Below are positions 7,762-27,336 of a stretch of 64,000 nucleotides of DNA, piece by piece. The notes beneath the pieces were generated by a model. That model did not search any database. It saw only the letters and a program-made list of their open reading frames with translations, and was not told the origin of the DNA. Position numbers and translations under genes: made by a program. Every line of letters starts with the position of its first letter. The stretch's first letter is position 1. Source of the stretch: Dimorphilus gyrociliatus. Taxonomy: Eukaryota > Animalia > Annelida. The DNA lies in assembly GCA_904063045.1 (NCBI GenBank), contig CAJFCJ010000017.1, forward strand, positions 434,001 through 498,000, written 5' to 3'.

Positions 7762-10700
7762 TCAATCGTCCAGTTGACATAGAGCAGCCACACCCCTATT
7801 AATCCAGTGTTGTTGAGGTTTATTAGATGGTAATTGCAACCATAGGACAAAATTAGTAGAGTGACCAGTTGTTGATAAAGTGCCTCTTCTGGCTGAAGTT
7901 TTATATACTGGACAGTCGTAGATTGGCCTTTTTTCGAATTTTGAGACCTCGCCCGGTTTGAGCCAAATAATTGGTATTGTATCGTATAGAATTTTCGGAT
8001 GCGATTCAGCTATTACCATAGTATCTCTGTCCCACCTTGCACCCTCGATAAATAAACCCTTTAAGGGGATAAAAACAATAAAAGCGTCATTAACAAGTCA
8101 TAATAATATTACTTATACTAAGTATTAATATTAATAATTTGGCAAGATAACTTACATAGATATAAGCTCCATCTTGTGGTTTCTCTTTCATTTCTTTTTC
8201 TTCGCTCATAACTTGAAATTCAAAGCCTAGATGATCAATTGGTATTTTATATCTACGAGCGTAGTTCTGCGACACTCCTGTAAAGAAGGATTGCGTAAAA
8301 TAGAAACCGGATACCCAAAAAGTAGTTGGAGTGCCGTTTTCAATCCAATCTTGAAAGAATTTTAATCTAGCTAAAAAGTCGCTAACGTAACCACCCAAAG
8401 GTTTTAGAGATGGATAGCTTTTTGCTGCCCAAACGGCAGGTACTTTACCGACTAGCATACTATCGAATATTTCTTCAAGTTCAGCCGACATAACGACTAA
8501 ACCTTTAATGGCCTTTTGTAGGTTAATAAGTGTACTTCTCACCACTCGAGTTAATCGATTAAATCGGATTAGTTCTTGTCTTAGTACCGTATTCATACTT
8601 TCTGTATATATAACGGGATATTTCTTAATTACGGCTTCCATATCGAAATCGGCTGGTAGTTTTGACAAGATATCAGCTGCTAAATCGAGAATAGTTTCGC
8701 CTGGTGACTTGCCCGCGCCTCCAGTCTGTCTTGGAAGTGTTAGGAGAATGCTGTCAAATAATTGGCTAGTTTCCTTATTATCTTTAGTAATATCAGCGTT
8801 TTCGTGTAGACCAAATACTTCGGGATGAGGAATAAGAGGCAAACCGCGGATATAATCAACGTACGATCTATAAGTTCCATCTTTAGGAGCAAAATATATC
8901 CCGGAAGCGGAAAATTTGTAGGATTCGATATCAATAATTTCATTACAGTAGAATAGTCCTAGTAGAGAGTTAAGAAGACGACGATCCTTGTCATCAGTGA
9001 CTCTTCCTCCGTAATTACATTCTCCTGTAAGGTAAAGGAGAGCTTCGAGAGGAAGTTCTTCGTAATCGGTTAAAAACATTCGCAATTGTGTTAACGAAAT
9101 TCTTAAATCGGATTCGTTAAATTCGTACGGTATGTTCCATCCTAAAGGTCCAAACTTTCGTCTCTCTTGTACTAAAGCGTGGAAGAAGCAGAGTCCGAAA
9201 AGCATTTTATGGAATCTGTGAGGTTCTCCACCTCCGTTGAAATAGGACGAATCGGAAACAGGATCGTTTAGGTATGATCTTAATAGATTTGCTCTTAAGC
9301 CTTTAGGAGGTTCGTTCGTCATCTTCACTCCATTCTGCAATATTGAAACTGGGAAATCATCGGATGGATAACTCGTTAGCCACAATCTGAAGTCCTTATG
9401 GGTATTTTCCGGTATAATTACTTCCTCGCAGATCTTTTCTAGTTTAGGCATCCAACTGGTTGCGAGATGGCAATTTTGTAATACAACCCAGGATCCATTC
9501 TTCAAAGCCTCATCTATCATACCCGATGCAATTGGACCTTGACCCTGTCCTAAGGAAATAGTCTTTATCTTATTTCCTGAGTATCCTTTATCTTCGGCAA
9601 ATTTAAGTAAGGCGTTCATTGGATCTGCACCAGGAGATAGAACAAATATAAGAGGAGCGCAGCAATTTGAGTCATTATACGATCCAGGTAGATCAAACGT
9701 AGGTGGTTCAATATATGACTGTCCCAGGTGTTCAACAATGAACTGTTGAACCGCTGGTACGATCTTATCAGGTCTAAACATTCTTAATACAACGATTCTA
9801 TCCAAACCAGACAGGATATCATAGGGCGATGGATATTTAAAAGCTTGCGGATCGGCTGAATCGTACATCGCCTTCCATTCATTAATATTATCCTTGACGT
9901 GCTCCATAAAATTTTTCAAGTTCGGCAGATCTGAAGCACGAACAATTTCCGACCATGATTTATCAATGAGCCAATCGGAGGCTGGATTTGGATGAGGATT
10001 TTCTAATGCAACTCCTCCAGTAAGTAGGAATCTCCATACCGTATCGTCAATTTGACCTCTTCCTTTAAGTATTCCGATACACAGTAAAAAGGAAAAGAGT
10101 AGCTTATCCTTTTCAAATAAAGATCTACAGACATTTTTGTAGATGCTATCGGAAAAATGTTCATTTAAATTCTCTATTCTAGTCTCTAAGTCTGTCGATG
10201 GTTCTGAATTTGCGATGGACTGCAGGTATAAATTAATAAACCAAACAAGAGAATACTGATACATAGGTTCAATATTTGATAAATCCGATATGCAGAAGAA
10301 TAGAATGGAAGAATGGACAGCTACAGGTTTATATCCATTTCTGGTTTGATCAATTTGAATTTCTGTTGTTGCTGCTATTTCTTGTTTAGCAGAAATCTGC
10401 TCTGAGAGATTTTTGGATGAAGATAAGATTTTAATTGCTTTTTCATCTTCTAGAATATTGCCTTGAGAAGAACTAAGAACCTCCAGAATGTTATCTTCAA
10501 TTTCTTTCAATTGTTTCTTATTTGCCGCACTTTCAACAATTAACTCGTTCTTTTTCTCTTCCAATTCGGGTTTTTCTTTAGCAGCGACAATACCCAACAA
10601 TTGGTCTTCTAATCCTTGAGGTGTTATCATAAAGTTCAATAAGCATACTTTGACGCTGACCTCGGGTAAATAATGAGGATTTCTTAAAACTGTTGTCATG

Positions 10701-13700
10701 TAGAGACGGAAATCTTTTGAGTATTCAATACTGTTATCTCCTAATTTGATATAGTCGACACCCTGTTGTCTGAAAGTTAACTTCTGAAGAACAGGCTCAA
10801 GGATAGGATCCAATTCTTCACCAACATTTTCAATCAATACTGGTTGGCCAAAAGTGATAGCGTTCTCCAAAGTTCTAATATAATTTGCATCAGTTAACTT
10901 AACAACATTCAATTTATTTGATTTTTCCATATTTTTGACCCATTTATTAGCTTGACCTTGAGGATCAATCATCAATGGCCAACGCCTAGAATTAGCAACG
11001 ATGATACCATTCTCAACTGAGAAAGAATCTACTGGGAGACCAGCTATGTTCCAAGCTCGAATTTTAACGGGTTCTCCTAGAGTTGCATTTAATGAAAATA
11101 TTTCAGAGCATGGAATCTCTTTCTCGGTGCATATTTTATGCCAAATTGCCGTTTGTTCATTACGGAAGTCGACGGTAAACGCTCCTAAATAAGCAACAAC
11201 AGCTGAAGATAGTAAAACGTCTCCAGTGATGTTAATATATTTTTCTCCAAGTTCTTTGGCATTAGCCGTCCATCTGTCTTTTTCTCCGCCTAATCCACCA
11301 ATAAGCTTCTCGGCTCTTTCCAACTTTTTCGTACATAGATCAATATTTTCTTCAAGATCTTTCTTTTTCTGGGTCATTGCTTCAAATTCATCATTAAGAG
11401 CTTGAAGTTTGCTTGTTACTTCGTTCACTTGAGCTCTTTTTGCATTTAATTTATCCATTTGAACGGCTAGTTCGCTTTCGGCTTCGTCCAATTTGGCTTT
11501 TTTCGGAGCAACAACTCGAGCTATCCTGTCGTACGTATCCATAGCCTTTACCCATTTACAAAGACCTTCACAAGCAGTAGACGCAGATTTAATAACCGAC
11601 GGTTCAAAATCGGGATTGCTCGTATATTTATCTCTAATCTTTTTAATGATAGGAGGTGGAATATTATCTTTATCGTAGGTTTTAAGTCTATTAAGGAAAT
11701 TCAAGTCGCTTAGAAGACGTAGAGATGCTGCCCAGTAGTCTTCTATCATTTTACCGGAACCACCAGGATCAGGTTTCCTATCCGCTTTCATATTTAACAT
11801 AACGCAAATAGATTCCATAACAATTTTAACAATAGTCGGCGGATTCTATAAAAAGAATAAATAATATATATCACTAAGATTACTCCTAGTAATTAGAATA
11901 TTAAATATACCTTCATCGATTTAACTACAGTGATATCATTAGGTTTTAAGGTATTTAGGGCACTAATTGCAGCTTCTAAAGCTGGAATAGCTTCGGCTAA
12001 ATCACTTTCGCAATCGTCTTTTATGGCTTGAGCTGCTGCCGCTGCTTCGTTTGCGACAGCTTCATCAGCAGCAACAACCTCCTTCTTTGCTTCAACTTCA
12101 ACGGTATCTTGTTCGATTTTAACCATAAGTTTTTCAGTTTCAGCACTAGTTTTAATCAATTCAGGTTGAAGATCAGTCAATTCTTGTTGCATAACTTCAA
12201 CTTGAGAAGCTGCAAATTCCAATTTCTCCAAACCGGTTAAGTATCTATTAAAGGTGTATTAAAGTTAGGTTTTACTTAATCGTTATTATATTGATATTTC
12301 TATTATTTACCGATTTTTAAGGGTCATTATTTCGTTACGCTTTTGACCCAATAGTTTCTTAAAGGTCAGAATTAGTTCAAGATAGGAAGTGGGCGTTACA
12401 TAATTCATTCTTCGGAGAGTATCATAATATTTAAGCGATAATTGTCTAACGCTTTCGTGAAAGTATTTACACATCGATACACTCTCAGTCCTTATATTAT
12501 CTTCTAAATCAACTTCTTCAAGGAACTTATTAGCCACCATTTCTAAAGCATCCTCCGGCCAAGCCTAATAAAGAAGTTTATTGATGAAAGGTACAACGCT
12601 TAATCGATTATTGTCAATAAATATAAAACTCACTTGGAACCAATCAATAGTACAGCAATTAATTAATGATGGAAATTGTCTAAGTCTAGTTCTAAAAGCA
12701 TCTCCTATTGGTGACATAGCCAGAACGATATGTAAATTTTGCCTGACACGATCAATGAAGTAATTATACATAGCTAACGGTGTAGCTTCCACTTTCTTTC
12801 CCTAAAAGTATAATAATTGACCTATTTTATTATATTATTACTTTTTAACATATAATAATTATTAAATATAAATAGAAATATACAAGGATAGACAATTGAA
12901 TATACAAGCGGTAATTTACACATTTAAAGCGACATTATAAAACTCTAGAACTTCGTCTCTTGTATAATGTCTACAAAATAATAAACAAACAAATTTCATA
13001 TATATCTATATAGTTTAATAAAACATATAATATATATGAAATGCCATTAAAACTTATAAATACTATATTTTATTAATTTTTTCTCCATTTAAATAGGTCG
13101 GGAAAGGTGACGTCATTTCACAGTATAATTTATCTTAATACTGTATAACTGAACGATAAGGATAATCAAAATCTAAAACTATCATGCAATAAGAGGGTCA
13201 AATACAGTATATGGAACCTCCATCTCTTTGTTAACCATTTCGCTAAGTTGCTCCGCTGAAATACCTAGTTTCTTCTTTTTCTTCTCTAATTCTTCTTGTA
13301 TCCTTATCATCTTATTTATGGATAATTTTTATAAGGTGTAGAAAAAAAACAAACAAATTGGATATTGTAGTTACATTAATTCAGTGTTCGATAAAAGGGA
13401 AGCTAAGGGATTTTGTATGATAAGAATTAATTATTTTTTATCTATTTTGTTTAGGTTATTAATTATTTATTTATAATCTAAAATTTAGGTCATTTAGTTG
13501 AAGGCTAAAACAGGGGGCGTGTCCTTAATCAAGTTCAATTTCATTTTATAAATTAAGGAATATATATATACTGTATATAAGATAAATTTTGAACTTACCT
13601 CGTTTCTCGCTACTGTTTGCATCTTTTCTATAATTTCCGCTTTTTCGTCCGATGCGTAAAGATTCGGCACATCTCCAGTATTTAGAATCATACTAATATC

Positions 13701-16700
13701 CTCCATGAATGATTCATTCTTTATTTGATTGTCAGAGAAAAGGAAGACAATTTGTTTACCTTCTGTACCAGCTTTCAACAATAGCTGAATGAAGAATAAT
13801 AATGAAAGTAATAGATTATAATTAGTATCTAATACACATATATAAAATACAAACTCTTTTGATATCATCTCTCCAATCGCTAATAGAGTAATTTTTTGTT
13901 ATTTCTATCTGGAAGAGGTCGTAATCTGCCATAAATGTTGCTAATTTTGTAGCACTTTGTCTTCCACTACCGCCAATACCTAAAGAGTAATTTAAATGTA
14001 AGATACTTGGAAAGTGTGATTATTCGAATAGTTGAATCTACCAGCTAAGAGGGCGTGTCCATTGTCCTGCAATAATACTCTACTAACTCTTGACACATGT
14101 TCAATAGCAAACTTGAACATGACCAAAGACATTGGAGCTTTGGATAGCTGGTTGTATTCACTAAGATAGTGTTCAATAGTTGATGTTAATTCTTTTAAAT
14201 CTGTAACTTCGTCATAGACTTTTGGTCCTTGATCTGGATTCATGTAATCTCCGAATAGTAACGATCTAATGTGTTCGTCTGTAACTTTTCCGCTTAGTGT
14301 CAAATGTCCAAGTATTTTATCAATGCTTTGTTTATAAGAATCCTGACAAACTTCTCTTACGACACTATATTTTTAATGGAAAATTGATTATATATAATGT
14401 ATATATAGGCAAATAAGCCATATAATAACGCATTACTTGAAAAAGGTTTCTCGGTCAGTATCGTCAATTAAACGATCGTAGAAGACTCTATATACTTCGT
14501 GTATCCAAAGTCTTAGTAGTTTGTCCGGTTCCTGCATCTTTGAAGATGGTACTAAAAGGACGCCCCTAATAACTCTTGAGAAATCTCGAAGGTTGAATAC
14601 GTAATGTGACTTTGTTGGCGTTGGTAAAAATCTAACGATTGTTTGTTTATAAACATTCATCGTCGCTTGAACCATAAGCTAAAAAATAGAGTACAAAAAT
14701 ATATTATTAAGTTTAATTATTGTTGGAAATCACAGTAAAAGCGTCTAATAATCAATAACATACTTTTCCCAATCGATTAAAAGCTTGATCGAATCCTTTA
14801 GCAAAATGCCAGTCTGAAATTGTTGTAAATATTCTACTCATAGTATTATCGTCAAATTCATCAATGGAAACAATCTGTAAATGACGAGTAAATCTTGATG
14901 TTATGTCGTTTCGTCCTCCTCCAGGTGGTCCCATAGCCGCGACAAACAACTATGAAAGAAACGGGTAAACTTAATGATAATACATCTATAGGCTATCGTC
15001 TTACATTATCAACTATGAATAACTTGGAAGTATCTTTCCTATCGTACCAATGACCATGATTTATCCATTGACGTAGTAGCTCAATTGGTGGTTGTGCACC
15101 ATATTTCTCTTTAGCTGGCATATTTAAGTCGTCAACAAAAACGACACATTTCTTGCCCAATGGAGGTCCATAAACGCCTTTTCGACGCCTAAATAGAGGG
15201 GAGGAGAGGGGGAAAGTTAATAAACATTATAAAAATCCTCTATACACCATAAGATTATTTATAGGAAAGTTAGTAAATGGTTATAGGTTGATAAGTTTAA
15301 AAATGTTAATATACTCTTAATAAATATTGAATGAATATAATAGAATATCTTAAAACGGCATTAGCATCATTCTAACTAATTGATTGACGCGTAATTTTCA
15401 TGCTGGAAGGAGGAAGGGAATGGAAGCGAAAAAAAAAAAACAAAAGATAAATCTACTTTGGATTCTTTATTATGGATTCAACAACATTAAAAATTATACC
15501 GTAGTTTACGATCACGTGAATCGTGATCTTGAATTAGAATGCCAGTGCGCCTGATTTGAACAATTTCGATAAAAAACAAATCATAACAACAGACTCTTTT
15601 CTTTACTTTTTTAATTTTGTATATCATTCCTTATTCATTGCTAATTAAATAGTTAGAGAGTGATTAACTAGAATATCATTCCATACACAAGCAGAATTGA
15701 TCATTGATTTTGACGTATAAATATGCAAATTAACTAGCAGGTACTTACTTATCAATTATTTATGATAAATAGAATATGAAGAAGGTTTTTGCTTACCTAT
15801 CAAGTTTACTCATTATAATATCCTGAGTTTGATTAGCGCTGGTTCGAGCAGAAAAGTTTACGCAATTTGGTATATATCTTATAAGAAAATGACAAGGATT
15901 AGACGTACTATATATAAAGTTATGAATATTCATTATATATAACTTACTGATCTTTTGGTAATTTAATAAGATAGCTGTTTGTGATAGCCGATTTACCAGT
16001 TCCGGTTGGACCAACGAATAAAACTGGGACCTCATGCATCAAATATGTAGTTAGAAAGAAGGACTGTCTAGCTGTTTCACTAGTAGGAATAATAAGGTCG
16101 CTGACCTAAAATTGTGGAAAAGAATAAAATTAAAAACCAATAGGTAAACCTTTAATATCATTTAAATAATTAGTTAATTAAAAGAGAAACTAATAAATTG
16201 TAATTAGATATTTGAATATTTTAACTAGAAAAATTTAGAAGTTATTTAAAGATTAATTAAATCAAAATAAAGAACTAAATAACTTTTATCAGGTTAATTA
16301 ATAAATGAAATATTAAAATTAAAAAAAAAGGTAACAGATTAAGATGCTTATGCAAACCTGTAACGGATCAAAAAAGTGCTGTATATATATATATAATAAG
16401 TGCAATTTTTTTTTAAAAAAACAAAAAATAACAAAAAAAATAATAAAAATAACAAAAACTTGTGTTCAATCTTTCAAAATTTGTTTGAATATGATTCTTT
16501 TAATAGATAAATGTTAAAATTTTACCTTTGCATTTGCCGCTAATTCTGTACTTTCTTTATCAATTGTTTCCATCCAATCAATCCAACCTCCGCTTCCTTT
16601 CTTTAGGAAGCAGAAATCGTAGACGCTTGATCTTTCTGGGAAAGCGTTACTCTAGAAAATTAGAAATATATATATATGTATATATATATATTTACATTAA

Positions 16701-17767
16701 ACATAAAAAAAGGATCGATACCTTTGTAATCTTGGATGATTTTGGTTTTGGATGATTAGAATTAGCTCCAGATATTAAATCTCTGAAGAAAACGTCGAAT
16801 TTTTTACGACTTTCTCCAGTTATTGTACCACCAACAGTCCAAACAAGTGAGAAAAGGAATAAACCTTGTAACCATAGCATAATCTGTTAAAATAAGATAG
16901 AAATAATGATAATAAGGATGATATTCTTATAATAAATAATAATATTCGAAATATCCTTCTGAAATGAATAAGAAAATAATGAAATATTAAAATTCTATAG
17001 ATATTTGTTTTAGTAAAAACATAATATTTAAGTAAGTAAAAACAACTTGAAATACGATAAATAAATAGAATAATAGTGCTATGACAAATTTTGTGGATGC
17101 ATACATTATTACGTAATACATTAATATTATGCAATAGTTTATACAATATATCTTTTTATGCAAGTGATATTAATAGTTCTTATTGTTATTTGGCATTCAT
17201 ATTTACAAGAAAAAAAAATATTGCGCAGCCAATAAACAAGGTGTTCGCTTTAAGCAAATTCATCTCAATAACTTTTAAGATAACATTCATGCAGTACCTG
17301 TTGATGACCCTGTATCGGGTCATTGTCAAGATCGAGTTCGCTATCCTATTATTTGCATATTGCATATTTGGTCAAGATGCAGGTTTGTTTGTTTTTTTTT
17401 GTTTGGTTTGGTTACGTTTTTGTTCGGAATTGTTTGTTTTTTGGGGAAGGAGGAAAAAAATAGGTCATTTCATTAGTTCTCACCGTAAATAGTAACTTTT
17501 GATTATTAAAGGTTCAATTAAAATTGGCATCCGCCTCACCTGATCCTCGGTAGACGGAGCCCTATAAAGGAATTGGAGCTTCTTTCCATACTATAAGTTA
17601 GAGTAGATTTTATCAATATTAATAAATTTTAATAGGCTTAAAATATAACTTATTCTTACAGTATGTTTACCTGTTTATAAATCAAACGTGCGTAATTAAC
17701 ACTTTTAACTTCTTCATCTTTTCCCTCATTCCTATCAGAATTTTCTTCAAGGGTAACGCCTAGACGC

Positions 17768-17801
<34 letters not shown>

Positions 17802-20800
17802 GATATAGATATATTTAATCAAGACTTTGTTATCTAATCTTTATATTCTATTCTAATTTTTCCCATTTAATAATTATTCATCTAGCTATTGAACTTTAAA
17901 ATACCTTTTGCTGTTGAACTGCCTTTTGAGTATCACTTTTCCGTCTACCTTTCTTTTTAAACTTGACATTTTTCCAGTGTGACTAATAACGAATGAAAAC
18001 TAGAGTTTTTCTCTTGGTCTTTGGGAGGGGAAGGGGAACATTTTTTTTTTAAAAAAAAAACTACTAACAAAAATTTTATCTCTATAAAAACTCTATTAAT
18101 TGGAAGAAAAAGCTTTAAAAATGTTAATATTTTTCTCTTCCAAGAGAAAAAGATTGCTTTTTTTCCTCATCAGAAAAAAAGACTTATGAAAAATTTCATG
18201 ATTGATTATATTTTTTTTATAAAATGGATACGTAACCAGCGAATATACCTGCGCAGGCGCATGCGTCTGTTGATTATTGCTATGATTATGATGATCTTTT
18301 TTCTTATTATGTTTCTTTTTCCGTTTTTTCGAATCCTTATGAATATCGATGCGAGAATCGGTTTTTTGAAGAAGCTAAATAATTCGTAGTTTTAACAGAT
18401 TTCGTTAAAATAATAAAATATGAATAGATGTTTTAATAAACGTGCCGAATGTCATATTTTGTTTAGTTATGTGTTGTTGTTGTTTTTTTTTGTTCACTTG
18501 TACAACGAGGACTCTTACCTGCTGCTTATTCGGAACCTCAATTTTACCATCAGGGTTTGACTAATACACAGTATTGAGTTATTTTTGGTAAGATATATAC
18601 AGTATATATATATATATATAGATAAATAAGAGATGAACAATACTAATTTTGCTGACTAAAACGAGTCCTACCTGCTGATTGGATAATTCCTTTCCTTCGG
18701 TTGCGCTGTCTCTTACTTCGTCTAATAAGCAGGTAAGTAGCCTTTGTAGAGTAAATACGAGGTGTATAGGAGAGGTATTTATAAGCATTTTGCAATTGTG
18801 CTGTATAAAATGCAAACAAGGATCTATTAACCAATCGAACATATCATTTAGCATTTCTTTATGATCTTCGCTCAAAGTATTAGGTAGTTCGTGCAACATA
18901 TAACTCTCTTTGAAAGGTTTCCAACCGAGTTGATGAGGTTCCAAGTAAATCATACCGCAACGTGATACAGTAGCAGGTGAAGCCTGCTCCAAGTCGGCAG
19001 GTTCAAAAATAAGATTCATTGAATTACTCATTTGAATAATTTCACCGGACATTAAGCACAGTTTTTTATTATCGTCCAGTACTGTGTTCATATTTTCAAT
19101 CCAGACCGCATCCACTGGACCATCGAATAAAATCCATTTTCTATCATCACTTGGATTACTTGCATATTCTCTGAAAGTATTAGCTAAAACTCCATCGGAC
19201 CATTCGTGGGATACGGGATCAAATTGACCATATAATTGCCCCATTGTTATAGATTTTGGGTTAATAATTCTATAAAAGACTTTGAATTCTTCCATTAGTC
19301 CTGATTCGTGTAAATCGCCTAAAGCATCAGCTAGAACCTGATAAGCGCTGGTCTTACCACCCATAGGTTCTCCAACAATCATCAGACCGTGTCTGACAAG
19401 AATCATTTCGTATACTTGAATAATCTTGTCAATGAACCACGGAACTTGTTGTAATTTTCTCTTGGCTATGTTATCTTTCAACGCTTCTAAGAAGACGCCT
19501 AAATCTGGTTTAACCAATTCGACACCAGGGAACAAATCGCTGATAATACCTTCAAAAAGAGGTACATCTTGAGCCAAGAATTTTGGCAAGTTAACGTCCA
19601 TAATAGCTTTAAGTAGTAATTCTGGTTCTTGTGTATCAGGGTGTTTTAATTTCAAGTTTCCAGCCGCAGTTAAAACACTCTTAACGGCTCTCATACCGTA
19701 ATCGTAGTGATGTTGTGAACTTAGCTGTTCTGAGCATAATCTATACGTAGCGACAATCTTCTGAGAGAGACTTCTAGCATCGACAAATCCCATAGAATAT
19801 AAGGATATTTCACCGATAAGAGCATAATCGGGTACCATCATAGCAACCGTACGGAAAAGAACTTTCAAGTTATCTGGCAATTCCTGTCTACCCGCATATC
19901 CAGGATTCATAGTAATAAACATAGTACAGGTTGGATTAAGAGATAGTTCAGTACCTTCAAAATTGAACTTCTTTTCACCACTGTTAATAGCCTGTTGAAT
20001 ACACTGGATCTGTTGAGCAACAACGGATAATACTTCTAATTCAATTCTATTAAATTCATCAAAACAGGCCCATGCTCCAGCTTGGGCTAAACCCTTGAAA
20101 AACTTTCCCATGGCTTTGTAATCCAAACCATCGCTGCAGTTGAAAACAACGCACTGTTTAGCAACCGCCTTCGCTAAATCTTTACTGGTTTCCGTTTTTC
20201 CAGTTCCGGCGGGTCCTTCGGGCGCTCCGCCAAGGTTTAGTTTAAGCGCACCCATAAGAGTTCTATAGCAACGATCCGTCAACGGTGTTATAACCAAACG
20301 TCCAGAGTTACCAAGGTATTCGTAACCGTATCTTAGTTCTGTTGTAATCATTCTTACCGATACATGCTTTTCTATCCAATAGTATCGTAACTGTGCCAAC
20401 CAGTCGAAATCATTAGCACTAGTTACATTTTTCTTGGCCATGGCCTCTACAACGTCTCTTGCGTGAACGTCTATGACGATAAGAGCTCCGAGAGTTATTC
20501 TTGCACCACTTTCGAGTTTTCCTCTCACTAATTCAACAGTTTCCTCTATTTGTTTATTACTCTTTTGTAAATAGTCATCTAAGCCTTTACTGTCTTTCAT
20601 CGATTCAGTAACTTCAGCAGTCCAGAAAATAGAACTAACACAAATTACAACTTGACCAGGCCATTCAAGTACCCATTTGTTTCTTGCTGTTGTCTTATAA
20701 CCATCTATTGATTTTGATATGACATTCCTTACGGATGATAACATGACATCTTCTACTTGTAAAAGCCATTTTTCAACCATACCTTTGGCTCTGGCGGGAA

Positions 20801-23800
20801 CAATTTTTTGTGTCAGTTCTACAGTTTCCTTTTCGGATGAAATCATCCCAACAATTTCCTGTTGTTCAGTAAATTCCAATTTAGCGATACCTTCAAAGCA
20901 CTTTTTCAAGTGTGGTTGAACTCGAAGAGGATCTTTTGTCTCAGATAAAATTTCTAAAAGTTCATCATTTGATAAGAAAAAGAAACGAGGGAAATAGAGA
21001 CGTTTCTTTTCTAGATAAGCGTTTAATCCTTTTTGAATTTCGTCCAAAAGGACGTTAGCCTCTTGTAGGCGTTTAAGCATATTGGGTTGGTCAGTCGCCT
21101 TTGAAAAGATAAATTGAATAATTGCTAAACAACAACGTAAAAATATTATTAATTATTACCTTTAAACAATGATTATCCTTAGAAGCTTCTGACATAATAT
21201 CCTTCCAAGTTGCATCAACTATACCAAACTTTCTCCCCTCCTCAGGCATTTGAGCCATAATATCTTCAGAGCTGAAAATTGGCTCCAAGTATAGCCAAGT
21301 AGCTTGAACCTTTAGCCACGCATCAATAATATCTTGCATAGACACTAATTTCTCAGTCCATTCTTTCATTTCAGCTTCGAATGGTTTAATGAAAGGGGAT
21401 CCTTGCATAGTTTGAGCTTTAATAATATGATCGTCCAAAACGACTTGAATATCATCAATTGCGGATAAGATTTTAATACCCTAAAAAGTTGATAGAAAGA
21501 AGAATATGAACAAAAGGAGGAGAGGTATAACCAAAACAATCATAAAAAAACAATGCATTTTAATAATAAGTCATATTCAGCTATTTATTTTCGACACTGA
21601 CGCTGATTGTTTTACATGTAATTCATATTTTTAAAAGGAGGGAAGTGTGCTATATATAGATATATACATTAAAATACTTTTAAATATACAACGACATTAA
21701 TCTCACCTCATAGTCAGGTAACTAAAAATATATGAAATATCACTAGTTAGTGAAAAGAAAACAAGTTCATGCGCGTTAATAATTTCATGCAGAAAGATAT
21801 GAAGAAGATAAGGAAGAGATATCAGAGGATAATTCCTAATCTTTTCTTCCTTTGAAGAAGATTTTCTTTTGTTTTTTGCCATGTTTTTTTTTAAAGAGTA
21901 TTTAAACATAAAAAGAAAGAAAATAAGCTAAGCTTGTTTGGATTAGTCAGAAAACTTGGATGAGAATTAGGACACGAACCATACGGATCTAAGTTAACCT
22001 AATCCTTATTTAACCCCTATCCAAGTTCGATTTACTCTTACACTCCCTTTCTTTAGCCTTAAACCAACAGGACCCTAACCGTTAATCCTTAAATTTCATC
22101 CGAGTTTTCTTACACTCCAGTTTATGTTTTTTGTTTGTCATTTAATGAAAAAAGAGTCAAAACAAAAAGACTTGTCTATCATATCAGTTCAATTAAAAAC
22201 TTGAAATACTAACCGTTTCTCTATATGGTACAAATTCAAAGTTCAAGTCTGTCCATTCCACTTTCATCTTCTTTAGATTCTTCTCTAAAGAGAATTCCTT
22301 ACTTGCAGCACCGCTTATTTCCTCTAATTTATCTAAGCATTTGCTTAAACCTAATTCAAGCATATTTGATAATGTAGCCTGTTCTCCTGGCTTAATATCC
22401 ATCTCCATAATATCACTCATTTGGGCCCAATGTCTATCTCTTATTCCTGGATTGCATATAACAGCCAAGATGGGTAGATTTTGCTTGAATTTGTCAATTT
22501 TAGCTTTGTAGACATTGGCTACTCTTTGAGGACCGGCCTGATCTTGGAAAGATTTATTCAATTTGAACAAAGTTCTATACATGTCTTGAACTTCTGATTC
22601 AATATCTTCAGCATTAAGTTGTTTAAACGGACCTAAAAGGGAATTGGTTCATTATTGTATATACATATAAATAATTTGTTAAACTTTTACCATTGAGCCA
22701 TTCTTCTTGCTTTTTATGGAAGAGATAGGTTGTATTCCATAGCTTTTCGTATGGTTCTTTTGCCTTGACCATAGCTGGTAATTGGATATATTCAGTTTGT
22801 TCCCATCCTAATAATTCTTCTTCCGTATTCACTTGTTCCATCTCTAATTTAGCAGCATCAAGATTTTCTTGTAACTTTGCCAAAGCATCTACATTGTTTC
22901 TCATCTCGTCAACGCTCATAATCTGTATTTAATAAACATGTAAAAAAAAAAAAGAAACAGGAAAACTGACGTAGAGATTATCTAATTAGCATATTAATTA
23001 ATAAGTTAGTTAATTAATCAAGTATATATATATATCTTTCCGATCATTAAATATCTAAATAAGAAGTTAATGTGATAGAAAGAAAGAAAAAAAAGATAAA
23101 TCTTTGCGGCCATTTTTAATTCTTGTTAGCGTTATTTATGAATTTGATATGAATGAATATATAGTATTTAAATAATAGTATAATCAAATATTCTGTGAAG
23201 AATATAAAATAATTGATTTAACCTCTCCGTATCGATTTATTGATAGCTGAAACAAAAAATTATCGCATCCACTTTCTTATTATTATGATTATTATTAAAG
23301 AAAAATACAAAACTGTAGTTACTATTTATGCACTCAAATTAAACAAACACAACCAGGTCGGTTCTAAATTTAATGGCCAAAATAAAAGAAAGAAACGTAC
23401 CTCTTTCTTCTTATACGATTCAACTTCTTTATGATATTCTTCTAATTTAGCTTCGAATGCTCTCCTCTTACGGCGAACTTCATCTTCAACTTGATCTCTT
23501 CTATTCATAAGACGATTTGTTGCCGTTTCGAATGTATTAAGAATTCTTTGTGGCCATTGAAACAATTGACTATTCAATTTTATATCTTCATCTATTCAAT
23601 TAATTAACATATAGTTATATTACTAACAAAATTATAAGTTATACTTGGCATAAAAGCGTAATCTAAAAGGAAACTAAGCCTATAGACAGCTTCATTGATT
23701 TCTTTTTTAAGTTCGTGGACAGTTTTATCCATACTCTGAAAAGATAATTAACATAAGATCAAGTTAAATATACAGGTGAATAAAATTTAAATAGATAAAC

Positions 23801-26800
23801 AAAAATAAAAAACCAATTAATTAATTAATTAATAAATATTTTAATTAAGTCATCGGAAGAAGAAAAAAATTAGAAAAAAATTCTTAACAATTTGACAAGT
23901 GTAGTTTGTTTGTTGTTATACTTTTAACATCAAATCAAGGCGACAACGAATGTAAAAGAGCTTACTTTTAAAGAGTTATTATAAAACATGTAGTGGGTGG
24001 GGTGTAATATTATAAATTACATAGAGTGTACACAGTTTATATATATATATATATATTTATAGATATATATATATATATATATTGCTTTTAATCTTTATAT
24101 ATTTATATAGTTCATATCAATAAAATAATAAATAAAAGTTGAGAAATGTAAACATTTAGTAGTGCAAGTTTTTGTTCTCTTATGTTTGAATTTTTATATT
24201 CAATATGTTTTTGGCGAGTGATTAATGAACGAGCTGCAAACCACTTACACCTTTCCCATATAGCTGATTGATTGATTTTAGTATGAGAAGAGTAAGGTCA
24301 ATTTAAAAATGAATATTCACATAGACAATGATAAATAATTATTTAGTTTGCTTTTAGGCTATTGAACATTGTTAAAAGTCTATTAGAAGTTACTTGAACA
24401 AGAGATTAAGTAGTTCAATATTTATTTTAATACCTTAGTTAAATATTTCTGTAGATTGACGAGCTCTTCAGTTTCTTCCGGTAATTCCATAACTTTGTTT
24501 TCCATTTCTACGTAACGACGAACAATACTGAAAATAAGGGAACATGACAAGAATAAATTGCTGAATATAGTAATATCAATAATAAAAATATCAATACTCT
24601 CTATTCATCCTGCGATTTTGGCTAACTTCAAAGGAGATTAGCTGCTCTTTTTGTTTATTTGCCCTCTGACATAGATCGTTGTTCAATTCCGAACAATTTA
24701 AACAAAACATCGATAGTGGTACAGTTATCCTTAAGGATGCAATTTCATCTTTTAAATTTTGAAATTCCCTAATTTTCTATAAAAATATTAAGAGAAAGAA
24801 TGGAAGAAACGTTAAATATCTTTCAATTAAACTTAATAAATATGCATAAATTATAAAAGAAGAGAAGAGAAACCTTAATAAAATCTGGAATATCATTTTC
24901 TTCTTGCTTCAGGAAATTAGCAACTGCTTGTTCAGCTTTATTATTCAAAAGATCATTATAACTCTTGTACGAGTTTAAATAATTATGAGGTCCAACTATA
25001 TTTAATTGAAAAATTTCCAGTGCTTGATTGATTATATCCTGAACTAGACTTTCTTCCAATCGAACTGGTCTGAGTAACATTTTACTGTCTGGAAATAGTT
25101 CCATTTCAACCTAGAATGAAACAATTAATCATATTTAATTAAGCAGTTTTTGTCACCAAGCTTTAAATAGTTGATAAATTACCCTCGGAATGTTGTCGTT
25201 ACAGTTTATTATCTCTTTAAAACACCTTATAATAATTTCTTTACATTCGGAAAATGGTGGATCAAAGATTATCTTTGGTTCTTCGACTTGTAATTTGATT
25301 AACATAATCTGTTTCATATTATAGACCAAATCCACATAATCTTCACCAAAATCGTTTCCATTCTGTATAATCAATGAATGGTTGTTTTTTATTAAATATT
25401 TAAGCTGATACCTTAGATTTTACTTAATAATTTACCTTATGAATTTGTAGAAACTTTAAAAAGTCATTTAAAGAATTGATTGTTAAGCTTCTTAATTGAT
25501 TTGACATTAAACTAGCAATAGAGCTAAAAAATTCTTCAGCCATCTCTCTAGAACCGGTAGGAGTATCCGGGCAAAGGTGCATCCAATGATTAAGATTTAC
25601 CTTAAATATTTCGCAAACTCTTGGAACCCATCTGTTAAGACGAGATTAAGTTTTATATGTTATTAATAAGCTACTTTCTAAATCTTTAATAGTTTACTTT
25701 TTTCTTAAAACGTCGTGCATCCTTGCGCATTGTTTCTTTACTTCCTGTTCAAAATCTTTCGGATGAAACGGTAAATCAGCCTCCAAGAGTTCTTCGTAGA
25801 CTACGAATCGTTTATCAGCAAATCTAGTAATAGAAAGAATAGAAATGTTGTATGATGTTGTTTAGATAAACATCTTAAGGAAACACTTACTCTTCCAGCC
25901 ATAACTTTTGTAAAAGTGACATCATAGGATTGACCGTATGCAAATGGTTAAGGTGAAAGTATTTAGCTTCTGTGTATTGTTCGTGCCAAGGCACGGGAGC
26001 ACGAATAACCCTATTTTAACAAATACACTCTTATGATAAAGAAAAAGAAGGATACGGTTAGGTATCCACTAACCTTTGAGGATAGGGCCTTGGTAACCAC
26101 TTAATATGAATTCGAACCTTCTCAGTTGGATCTTTCAGAATGTAATCAACTGTTTAAAACACAAACAAACAATAAATAAAGCTTTTCTCAGAACAGTTTT
26201 CTCTCTTCTTTGGTCAATTGCACACATATTTTTTTAATACAAAAATCTTACCGATAGCTTTTTTCAGGCTCATTTCGTAATCTTCCCTTACTTCTTCCTT
26301 TAAATTCGAGTACAAAGGTGCCAAGAGATTAGAGGCAAAAGCTGATTTCGTAAGGAATTTATTTGGTATTAAACGATCAATGCGATCCATAATGTCTCTG
26401 TCCTGAGCGGCTAGCATATCAGCGCTTATACCTCTATTTATATAATAATAGTAGCGCTGTTAATTGGTAAATAAGGAAATAAAGTTAAACAAAGTGTAAT
26501 TAGTCGTATAAAAGAAAATCGATAATTTATAATTTAAACCTCTAAATCCTGATCTCGAGGCTCTTCTATGTCTCTTGCCTCGTCCTCTTCAATTGTTTTC
26601 ATTATATCTAATTGCTCTACAGGAGTCAATGGTCTACTCCTTTCGCCGTTGTTATCTCTTTGTATGATCTTTTCGTCTAACTTTCTCTTTCTACTTTTTA
26701 AAGTAGTCAAGTCGAGCGAAGTTCTATTTCTTGGTGTCCTTTGCAAGAATGACATTTCCTTTTTTATCCTTGGAATGTCATTCATGGTCAGATCGCTTGC

Positions 26801-27336
26801 GGTTGGTGTATAATTATTACCAATAGACTGACTAGGAGTCCTATAATACTTTTGCTCCTTAAAAGGAGCAGCTTGAGTCCAAGAAGCCCTCATTATTGGA
26901 GGGTGTTCACCATGTTTTTGTACCATCTAGACGACAAGTAAACATTAAATTAAAATAGGATATCAATAAATCAATACTTTGAGCAGTGAAAAGGTGACAA
27001 CTCACTTTATACAAATCGGAAGGGTGATCTCTCTCCTCCGGAGGTAATGGAGGTAAGACTGGTAGTTTCATTTTATTACTTAATAAGTTACTGGAGGAAA
27101 ATTCGGGTGTGTTTTGATCTTCTCGATTGGAGCGCAAACTCAGCATCGGTAAACCAACCTCGAAAAGTGATAACAGAAAATATCATGCATTGTCTAGTGA
27201 TCGTCTGTTAATATAAAGTTATTAAATAGTAATTTACCTCGCTTCCATGTGCTTTTTCCGGTACTGGTAAACATTTCTTCTTCCTAGCAGAACCTATGCC
27301 ATTATAGTCCTGCAAATGGGCTGCAGCTGATGACAT
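7762..27336 (-). CDS. DNAH3: Axonemal inner-arm dynein heavy chain, DNAH3 orthologue (multi-exon)
   Basis: P-loops [31 protein letters not shown]; stalk and AAA5/6 in the 3.7-kb exon; C-terminal [15 protein letters not shown]. The N-terminus ([17 protein letters not shown]...[11 protein letters not shown]...SIGNNY) resembles DNAH3 as I recall it. Likely ATG at 27336 (MSSAAAHLQ). Confidence 0.93.
13182..13310 (-). other. Candidate DNAH3 alternative exon in the AAA4-region intron ([31 protein letters not shown]|[11 protein letters not shown])
   Basis: AG at 13312-13311, then a 42-codon frame matching the phase-0 intron. It is either terminal or a cassette using a weak GT at 13217. Confidence 0.45.
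15500..15550 (-). other. Candidate 51-nt phase-2 DNAH3 cassette exon ([18 protein letters not shown])
   Basis: aaatcag|GCGCACT...AAACTACG|gtataa; matches the phase-2 intron 15189-15796; no stop. Confidence 0.6.
16358..16378 (-). other. Candidate 21-nt DNAH3 microexon (HFFDPLQ)
   Basis: atacag|CAC TTT TTT GAT CCG TTA CAG|gtttgc in the phase-0 intron 16106-16525. Confidence 0.5.
17298..18560 (-). other. Array of six candidate in-frame DNAH3 cassette exons: 18560-18519, 18374-18249, 17982-17905, 17766-17671, 17590-17540, 17345-17298
   Basis: Each is flanked by AG/GT, has a length of 42, 126, 78, 96, 51 or 48 nt, has no stop, and is phase 0 like the host intron 16884-18671. Confidence 0.7.
21707..21721 (-). 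other. Candidate 15-nt DNAH3 microexon (LPDYE)
   Basis: atatttttag|TTA CCT GAC TAT GAG|gtgaga in the phase-0 intron 21481-22213. Confidence 0.65.
21946..22113. mobile_element. Putative MITE with imperfect TIRs and internal degenerate TAACCC repeats
   Basis: gtcagaaaacttggatgagaatt versus the reverse complement of the right end, gtaagaaaactcggatgaaattt (19/23 match); no clear TSD. Confidence 0.55.
23223..23246 (-). other. Candidate 24-nt DNAH3 microexon (LSINRYGE)
   Basis: ttttttgtttcag|CTA TCA ATA AAT CGA TAC GGA GAG|gttaaa in the phase-0 intron 22923-23400. Confidence 0.6.
24249..24263 (-). other. Candidate 15-nt DNAH3 microexon (LYGKG)
   Basis: aatcag|CTA TAT GGG AAA GGT|gtaagt in the phase-0 intron 23736-24433. 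Confidence 0.6.

Follow-up and report, generated by a model that had tools for sequence, protein, structure and literature searches.

We analyzed a 64,000-nt stretch of the Dimorphilus gyrociliatus genome (Annelida; assembly GCA_904063045.1, contig CAJFCJ010000017.1, positions 434,001–498,000 of the forward strand), here called the window. An axonemal dynein heavy chain gene orthologous to DNAH3 occupies positions 7765–27336 on the minus strand, and is represented by three public models (DgyrCDS10811, DgyrCDS10812 and DgyrCDS10813) with 35–36 coding exons. Codon-for-codon threading places the public proteins P0529, P0528 and P0440 exactly on the minus strand, starting at 27336 and ending near 7765. 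DgyrCDS10813 was reached by a protein search with a nemertean orthologue; DgyrCDS10812 and DgyrCDS10811 belong to the same protein cluster. Pfam finds DHC_N2, AAA_6, Dynein_AAA_lid, AAA_7, AAA_8, MT, AAA_9, Dynein_heavy, AAA_lid_11 and Dynein_C in P0529, which is the complete layout of a dynein heavy chain: linker, AAA1–6, stalk and C-terminal domain.

The nine top full-length matches share 66–74% identity with this protein, and seven of them are named DNAH3 or DNAH3-like. The remaining two are a Patella protein that clusters with P. vulgata DNAH3 and an unnamed transcript product. Orthologues of DNAH3 were matched at full length in Patella, Tubulanus, sea urchins and lungfish, with molluscs, nemerteans and echinoderms giving the best values (70–74%). 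The highest-scoring metazoan protein named DNAH7-like in the match table reaches about 54%. Judged by sequence similarity, the gene is a DNAH3 orthologue, closer to DNAH3 than to DNAH7, DNAH12 or other paralogues. Two protein searches missed their aim: as a query, the 817-amino-acid exon does not reach full-length proteins, and the best representative (P0001) proved to be a chytrid DHC7.

An initial annotation of this DNA had singled out seven long introns in the gene. All seven are GT..AG on the minus strand and have the phases given there: phase 0 for six and phase 2 for the one at 15189–15796. All coordinates of introns and exon units below refer to the minus strand. Numbered from the 5' end of the gene and placed on the Pfam domains of P0529 together with the exon units discussed below (U1–U7), intron 1 (23736–24433, 698 nt; U1) and intron 2 (22923–23400, 478 nt; U2) lie in the tail and intron 3 (21481–22213, 733 nt; U3) lies within the linker domain DHC_N2. 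Intron 4 (16884–18671, 1788 nt; six units, U4a–f) is in the middle of the AAA lid PF17852, intron 5 (16106–16525, 420 nt; U5) is at the N-terminal edge of AAA3, intron 6 (15189–15796, 608 nt; U6) is within AAA3 and intron 7 (12802–13598, 797 nt; U7) is within AAA4. The described contrast in size stands for the other introns, as the remaining 28 in the public threading measure 53–102 nt; the published median for the genome is 66 bp (PMC7854359). It needs correction for four of the long ones, which are already split by annotated exons in public models and are undivided only in the isoform that skips these exons. Intron 1 is divided into 170 + 513 nt around U1 in all models, intron 2 into 154 + 300 nt around U2 in one model, intron 5 into 147 + 252 nt around U5, and intron 6 into 246 + 311 nt around U6 in one model.

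The original argument for hidden exons was that every long intron contains an AG..GT segment that is free of stops, divisible by three in length and in phase with its host. This is a correct description, with 5 to 106 such segments per intron, but it is statistically empty. In 300 dinucleotide-preserving shuffles per intron, the probability of at least one qualifying segment was 0.94–1.00, and about 0.92 for all seven introns jointly. Wrong phases and the antisense strand gave segment counts similar to the host phase. Counts rose above the shuffles in two introns only, those of 797 nt (34 vs. 14.5) and 1788 nt (106 vs. 38). A splice-site weight matrix was built from 27 introns of the gene and applied as a 10th-percentile filter; it separates true sites weakly, and left 13 candidates against 6.3 ± 2.8 in shuffles (p about 0.02). 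U1, U3, U4b, U4e, U4f, U5, U6 and U7 pass this filter, and U2, U4a, U4c and U4d fail it. The statistical argument of the initial annotation thus carries no weight. Our experience with gene modelling agrees: a model made by chaining open reading frames (ORFs) ran false exons through introns, with about seven local errors relative to the public protein, and was replaced by the public threading. The ease with which chaining threads an open frame through invented exons shows that such frames readily arise by chance. Short introns are where the first gene model departed from the public protein, at 12553–12594 (minus strand) and five other places; its in-frame stop at 12565–12567 is removed by a 69-nt intron in the public model.

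Conservation in a relative is far more selective. Two genomic contigs of the relative (L001 and L002; Logan SRR23372228 and SRR23372229) were found via a Logan-derived protein in the same cluster. They have an identical exon–intron layout across at least 15 kb, with about 82% identity in exons. The large constitutive exon is 96% identical in amino acids and 82% in nucleotides, and synonymous sites are saturated, so neutral intron sequence should not align. The relative's homologous introns 1–7 measure 1294, 565, 615, 2048, 504, 568 and 861 nt, all GT..AG. All seven contain conserved islands, which resolve into twelve units. Every one of the twelve has AG before it and GT after it in both species, with equal length, no indels, a length divisible by three and an open host frame. 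Identity to the relative is 82% in the units, 59% in their 40-nt flanks and 43% in the rest of the introns.

In the host frame (NG86 method), the twelve units have a nonsynonymous divergence (dN) of 0.115, a synonymous divergence (dS) of 0.78, dN/dS of 0.15 and no stops. The eight units that are unannotated (183 codons) behave alike, with dN 0.127, dS 0.81, dN/dS 0.16 and no stops. Shifted frames give dN/dS of 1.6–1.9 and 13–59 stops across both sets, with 1.7–1.9 for the twelve units. Substitutions in the units are concentrated at codon position 3, and the pattern points to purifying selection on the encoded peptides. Compared with the constitutive exon, the units show higher dN (0.12 vs. 0.03) and lower dS, which is the usual pattern for alternatively spliced exons. 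The comparison shows conserved coding sequence in the host frame in every one of the seven long introns, and supports one or more cassette exons of DNAH3 in each.

Four of the twelve units (U1, U2, U5 and U6) are in public models, three of them annotated as alternative, and the other eight are new predictions. Alternative variants in the D. gyrociliatus annotation were derived from PASA transcript assemblies (PMC7854359). The three public isoforms of this gene differ only by U2, U5 and U6, and U1 is common to all. U1 (24249–24263, 15 nt) is a microexon encoding LYGKG. Its presence in all three models, where it is seen only as included, means that it may be constitutive. In the relative it has one synonymous change, keeps AG/GT and has nearly identical flanks; none of 50 DNAH3-like orthologues has residues at its site. 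U2 (23223–23246, 24 nt), an alternative cassette encoding LSINRYGE, is in DgyrCDS10813 only and differs from the relative by two changes, both synonymous. Another candidate in intron 2, NRPGC at 23349–23363, lies 37 nt from the donor, and was discarded as neither annotated nor a conserved unit. U5 (16358–16378, 21 nt) is a microexon encoding HFFDPLQ (LFFDPLQ in the relative), in DgyrCDS10813 and DgyrCDS10811 and absent from DgyrCDS10812. U6 (15500–15550, 51 nt) is an alternative cassette, in DgyrCDS10812 only, that inserts at LD|RRRKG. The only frame of U6 open in the relative is the one demanded by phase 2, and six of its eight differences are at position 3.

Two of the unannotated units are alone in their introns. 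U3 (21707–21721, 15 nt) is a candidate microexon encoding LPDYE, within the sole conserved island of intron 3 (21672–21777). The relative has LPEYE there, and keeps AG/GT and an upstream ACTAAC motif resembling a branch point. U7 (13218–13310, 93 nt) is a candidate cassette with a possible 75-nt version via a donor at 13236. In the relative it is 93 nt without indels, the acceptor and both candidate donors are kept, and frame 0 is the only frame open in both species.

The 1788-nt intron would hold the other six, all unannotated. These are U4a (18519–18560, 42 nt; 95% identical in the relative, same length, AG/GT), U4b (18249–18374, 126 nt; lysine-rich, 89% identical without indels, frame open in both species), U4c (17905–17982, 78 nt; 77% identical at equal length, with AG/GT preserved and an open frame in the two species), U4d (17671–17766, 96 nt; 72% identical, same length, AG/GT kept, with frame 0 the only frame open in both species), U4e (17540–17590, 51 nt; seven of eight differences at codon position 3) and U4f (17298–17345, 48 nt; eight of twelve differences at codon position 3). 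The encoded peptides have a high content of lysine, glutamine and aspartate. We rejected the possibility that U4a–f are tandem duplicates or mutually exclusive copies, as their lengths range from 42 to 126 nt and their pairwise scores are weak; they are not mutually homologous. A swap of U4a with the end of the upstream exon via an internal donor was also rejected, because that donor is not conserved (GTAAGA vs. GTCAAA in the relative). Three further conserved islands in this intron (17066–17127, 17375–17389 and 17245–17258, minus strand) have no AG..GT open frame. Overall, eight of the twelve units are 42–126 nt long; U1, U2, U3 and U5 are 15–24 nt.

RNA contigs were compared over 12745–18744, that is, long introns 4–7, using the best-supported joints only. 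Two sources were used: X2, which is D. gyrociliatus and behaves as a transcriptome, and X1, a coral metatranscriptome that contains D. gyrociliatus. A 6692-nt X2 contig at depth 377 joins directly across the 797-, 608-, 420- and 1788-nt introns, and so skips the annotated exon U5. X1 contigs join directly across three of the four (797, 608 and 1788 nt). Over the 420-nt intron, an X1 contig has 16526–16651 and 16035–16103 placed with 23 unplaced letters between them. These coordinates are exactly what inclusion of 16358–16378 would give (the convention for ambiguous letters was checked on a known joint), and U5 is the sole 21-nt AG..GT segment in the intron. Skipping of U5 is therefore seen in X2, and its inclusion in X1 is probable.

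Contig ends carry further information. Logan contigs break at branch points of the k=31 graph, and for each pairing of exons within the 1788-nt intron we predicted where spliced and unspliced forms would split. Two X2 contigs correspond to unspliced paths, one between the U4a donor and the U4b acceptor and one between the U4e donor and the U4f acceptor. The ends of X2 contig 18347–18548 agree to the nucleotide with the predicted 18347 (U4b acceptor) and 18548 (U4a donor), and those of X2 contig 17318–17568 with the predicted 17318 (U4f acceptor) and 17568 (U4e donor). The value 17568 is specific to the U4e-to-U4f junction; other partners predict 17569. In addition, an X2 contig starts at 17347, the branch point predicted for the U4f acceptor, and the main X2 contig ends at 18701, the branch point predicted at the constitutive donor. 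These contig ends, which are not observed junctions, suggest that U4a, U4b, U4e and U4f are spliced. The contigs gave no RNA support for U4c, U4d or U7. X2 coverage is also colinear from 17568 down to 17076, where it stops, a pattern that may come from read-through past U4f and early termination of the transcript, or else from a regulatory element. The worm sequence in X1 shows three exonic differences from the window (14205 A>G, 14890 A>G and 14896 T>C), most simply explained as differences between strains.

The same junctions vary in other animals. We took DNAH3 isoform sets from three cluster look-ups and mapped the differences between isoforms within each species, using residue numbers of the skipping form. 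In these database models, six of the seven long-intron junctions are alternative sites in mollusc, echinoderm, hemichordate or chordate DNAH3. At residue 494 (intron 1) Dreissena has mutually exclusive exons. At residue 587 (intron 2) sea urchins, a sea cucumber and a crinoid have LRGK/PRGK, and Littorina has 9 additional amino acids. At residue 804/805 (intron 3) amphioxus, Styela and Clavelina have mutually exclusive exons. Glandiceps gains 27 amino acids at residue 1822 (intron 5), and Octopus isoform X1 gains 10 at residue 1901 (intron 6). At residue 2317 (intron 7) Mytilus gains 4 or 23 amino acids, Dreissena 7, and oysters and Gigantopelta 4 each. Macrostomum has an insert at this junction too, not annotated as alternative; inserts there span 4–23 amino acids overall.

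Five further events fall at residues 390, 765, 3120, 3174 and 3451, one at a short Dimorphilus intron and four at no intron. Seven events thus coincide with any of the 35 Dimorphilus junctions, and six of these are on long introns. A hypergeometric estimate by hand gives about 3 in 100,000, a rough figure because the sampled species are not independent. Around residue 3174, which lies in the large exon 8095–11845, isoforms of Mytilus, Dreissena, Pecten and oyster differ by inserts of 5–8 amino acids. Dimorphilus has no intron at this residue, so the alternative site seems to have gone when the intron was lost. The RefSeq isoforms of molluscs, echinoderms, hemichordates and chordates resemble the Dimorphilus gene in having alternative inserts or mutually exclusive exons at the same junctions. 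They differ in that most of the insert peptides have no recognizable homology to the Dimorphilus units, and in that the chordate events are mutually exclusive exons and not cassettes. In none of these isoform sets does an event fall on the junction of the 1788-nt intron. No paper found by our literature search describes these isoform differences.

The introns also carry candidate regulatory sequence. Counted on the sense strand, the seven introns contain six copies of GCATG where shuffles give 1.5 (p 0.003). Three copies extend to the full TGCATG, and all three are conserved in the relative: 21786–21791, which is 69 nt upstream of U3; 17288–17293, 5 nt past the U4f donor; and 13183–13188, 31 nt downstream of the U7 donor (all on the minus strand). 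UGCAUG is the binding motif of Rbfox proteins, and Rbfox-type factors may act through these conserved sites. A UGC close upstream of a microexon's 3' splice site and common to both species was noted by eye in the alignments for U5 only; no scan for it was run.

Searches of the introns for other known content gave the following. The Rfam search yielded no RNA family, snoRNAs included, and only a (TA)n-driven near-hit to mir-1277. Pfam on eight intronic open frames gave nothing above threshold, and a repeat search found microsatellites only and no transposon family. A 15-nt palindrome, TATATACWGTATATA, has seven copies in the window (at 840, 6813, 13565, 18594, 36755, 52614 and 57363; two within long introns) against none in 100 shuffles. 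Many contigs from the DNA runs end at 13560–13579, which suggests a palindrome motif dispersed genome-wide beside (TA)n runs. Within the AAA1 coding exon, 20756–20948 (minus strand) matches Rfam RMST_9 at 69.6 bits (gathering threshold 65). RMST_9 models a conserved region of a vertebrate long non-coding RNA, and here it looks to pick up dynein coding sequence and not an RNA gene.

We propose that the seven introns owe their length to small coding cassette exons, at least one per intron, and to the control sequence that flanks them. There would be twelve such exons of 15–126 nt, each a multiple of three and open in the frame of its host intron, so that any combination of exons keeps the dynein reading frame. 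Most of them would be skipped in the default transcript and included through regulated splicing that probably depends on cell type or stage. Inclusion would insert short, mostly charged peptides at two tail sites, the linker, the AAA lid loop, the edge and interior of AAA3, and AAA4; at the lid loop, the six-exon array would add up to 147 amino acids. The inserts may tune docking or motor regulation. We assign a probability of about 85% to the core of this proposal, that the seven long DNAH3 introns hold regulated cassette exons, skipped by default, which insert peptides at tail and motor sites. The earlier suggestion that the long introns carry regulated exons is supported by the public models, the relative and the RNA contigs. 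Its expectation that RNA would reveal such exons holds for U5, with skipping seen and inclusion probable, and is tempered by a dominant transcript that skips all units in the four introns covered.

A number of observations weigh against regulated cassettes, beginning with that dominant transcript. X2 contigs within the introns are colinear with the genome at depth 9–18, compared with 377 for the main contig, so inclusion in bulk RNA is low at best. One X2 contig passes the U4f donor unbroken, and X2 contig 13225–13622 and X1 contig 17449–17588 fit no predicted branch point. For U5 the limit is that inclusion in X1 follows from contig coordinates, the 23 letters themselves not having been seen; for the eight unannotated exons inclusion in mature messenger RNA is likewise indirect, with no junction read or contig seen directly. 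With the long introns removed whole, the alignment to nine DNAH3 orthologues is ungapped at all seven junctions, which at first spoke against hidden exons, and no orthologue examined has an insert exactly at the junction of the 1788-nt intron. Finally, most of the approximately 190 raw candidate segments are chance. One could extend this to all of them: the in-frame AG..GT segments would be accidents of AT-rich sequence, and the introns long through microsatellites, repeats or cis-regulatory open chromatin. The shuffles, the ease of threading spurious exons by naive ORF chaining, and the (TA)n runs and repeated palindrome in the introns are all consistent with this. So is the genome paper, which ties larger introns to ATAC-seq peaks and attributes them to intronic open chromatin (PMC7854359); that cause may apply here too, and it is compatible with exons plus control sequence. 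Chance does account for the bulk of the roughly 180 raw segments outside the twelve units. It does not explain twelve units conserved in exact length and splice dinucleotides at dN/dS 0.15 with dS saturated, four of them in transcript-based public models, so for the twelve units it is largely refuted, and we regard it as very improbable.

Conserved islands could also be something other than DNAH3 exons, such as small same-strand genes nested in the introns or conserved non-coding elements. The lysine- and glutamine-rich, low-complexity peptides of the U4 units are unlike dynein, X2 intronic contigs run colinear and unspliced through some unit boundaries, and the 1788-nt junction lacks inserts in orthologues, as either idea would have it. 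Against both stand the lengths, multiples of three in twelve of twelve units (six of six within one intron), an open frame that always equals the host phase, including the phase-2 case, and the four units proven in DNAH3 models. The islands match nothing in Pfam or Rfam, and the predominance of position-3 substitutions argues against non-coding elements in particular. We consider this explanation unlikely, if somewhat less so than chance. Lastly, the units might be ordinary constitutive exons that the initial annotation missed, with no programme of alternative splicing. LYGKG in all three public models and the 21-nt insert deduced from the X1 coordinates would fit. However, the dominant X2 contig joins directly across four long introns and X1 contigs do so as well, the public isoforms differ in three units, and up to about 300 DNAH3-like orthologues align ungapped across most junctions. 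The present contigs contradict constitutive inclusion for 11 of the 12 units, and its likelihood is slight. Regulated cassette exons remain the reading that we prefer.

A broader possibility is that DNAH3 carries an ancient, Bilateria-wide map of alternative-splicing sites, which survives in this compact annelid genome as the gene's only long introns, together with a dinophilid array of six cassettes in the AAA lid, and that different ciliated cells build mechanically different motors from it. We offer this tentatively, with odds a little short of even. If true, the six-cassette array would yield up to 64 loop variants, and eleven optional exons could in principle generate some two thousand versions of a single inner-arm dynein. 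Axonemal dynein heavy chains are usually regarded as following a rule of one gene for one motor, with paralogues as the source of diversity. That view would be challenged by one inner-arm dynein gene holding twelve conserved optional exons, several within the AAA ring, and the sharing of six of the seven sites with distant phyla in database models suggests that splice-level tuning of the motor is old and widespread. It also raises a testable question: do epidermal bands, protonephridia and sperm cilia use different isoforms of the same dynein? In compact genomes, a rare long intron may be a good pointer to hidden regulated exons, and cross-species conservation, not open frames, is what separates real ones from chance.

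A full-text literature search turned up no description of microexon or cassette-exon sets, whether in DNAH3 or in another axonemal dynein. This agrees with the initial annotation, which knew of no such set for DNAH3; its claim to novelty is reduced by the four exons of the twelve that were already in public annotation. Three known systems offer comparisons. Mutually exclusive exons occur in other motors, including the cytoplasmic dynein heavy chain of Schistosoma and arthropod muscle myosin (WebScipio; PMC3228551). Like these, the Dimorphilus gene would have alternative exons in the motor domain, several arrayed in one intron; unlike them, U4a–f have unequal lengths and no homology to each other or to the neighbouring exon, and would be cassettes. 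The neural and photoreceptor microexon programmes of Srrm3/4 (PMC9303857) also involve short, frame-preserving exons with strongly conserved flanks, skipped by default and lying in enlarged introns, in genes of the cytoskeleton and cilium. At 15–24 nt, U1, U2, U3 and U5 are within the 27-nt length limit for such microexons, but eight of the twelve Dimorphilus units (42–126 nt) are too long for strict microexons. In Drosophila, CG17150/Dnah3 has an unannotated 39-bp exon that is included in chordotonal neurons and skipped in testis (zur Lage et al., 2019; PMC6367277). This is a small, frame-preserving exon specific to a ciliated cell type, in the orthologous single-headed inner-arm dynein. The fly gene has one such exon near its 3' end, whereas Dimorphilus would have twelve across the tail, linker, AAA lid, AAA3 and AAA4, with putative cell-type specificity.

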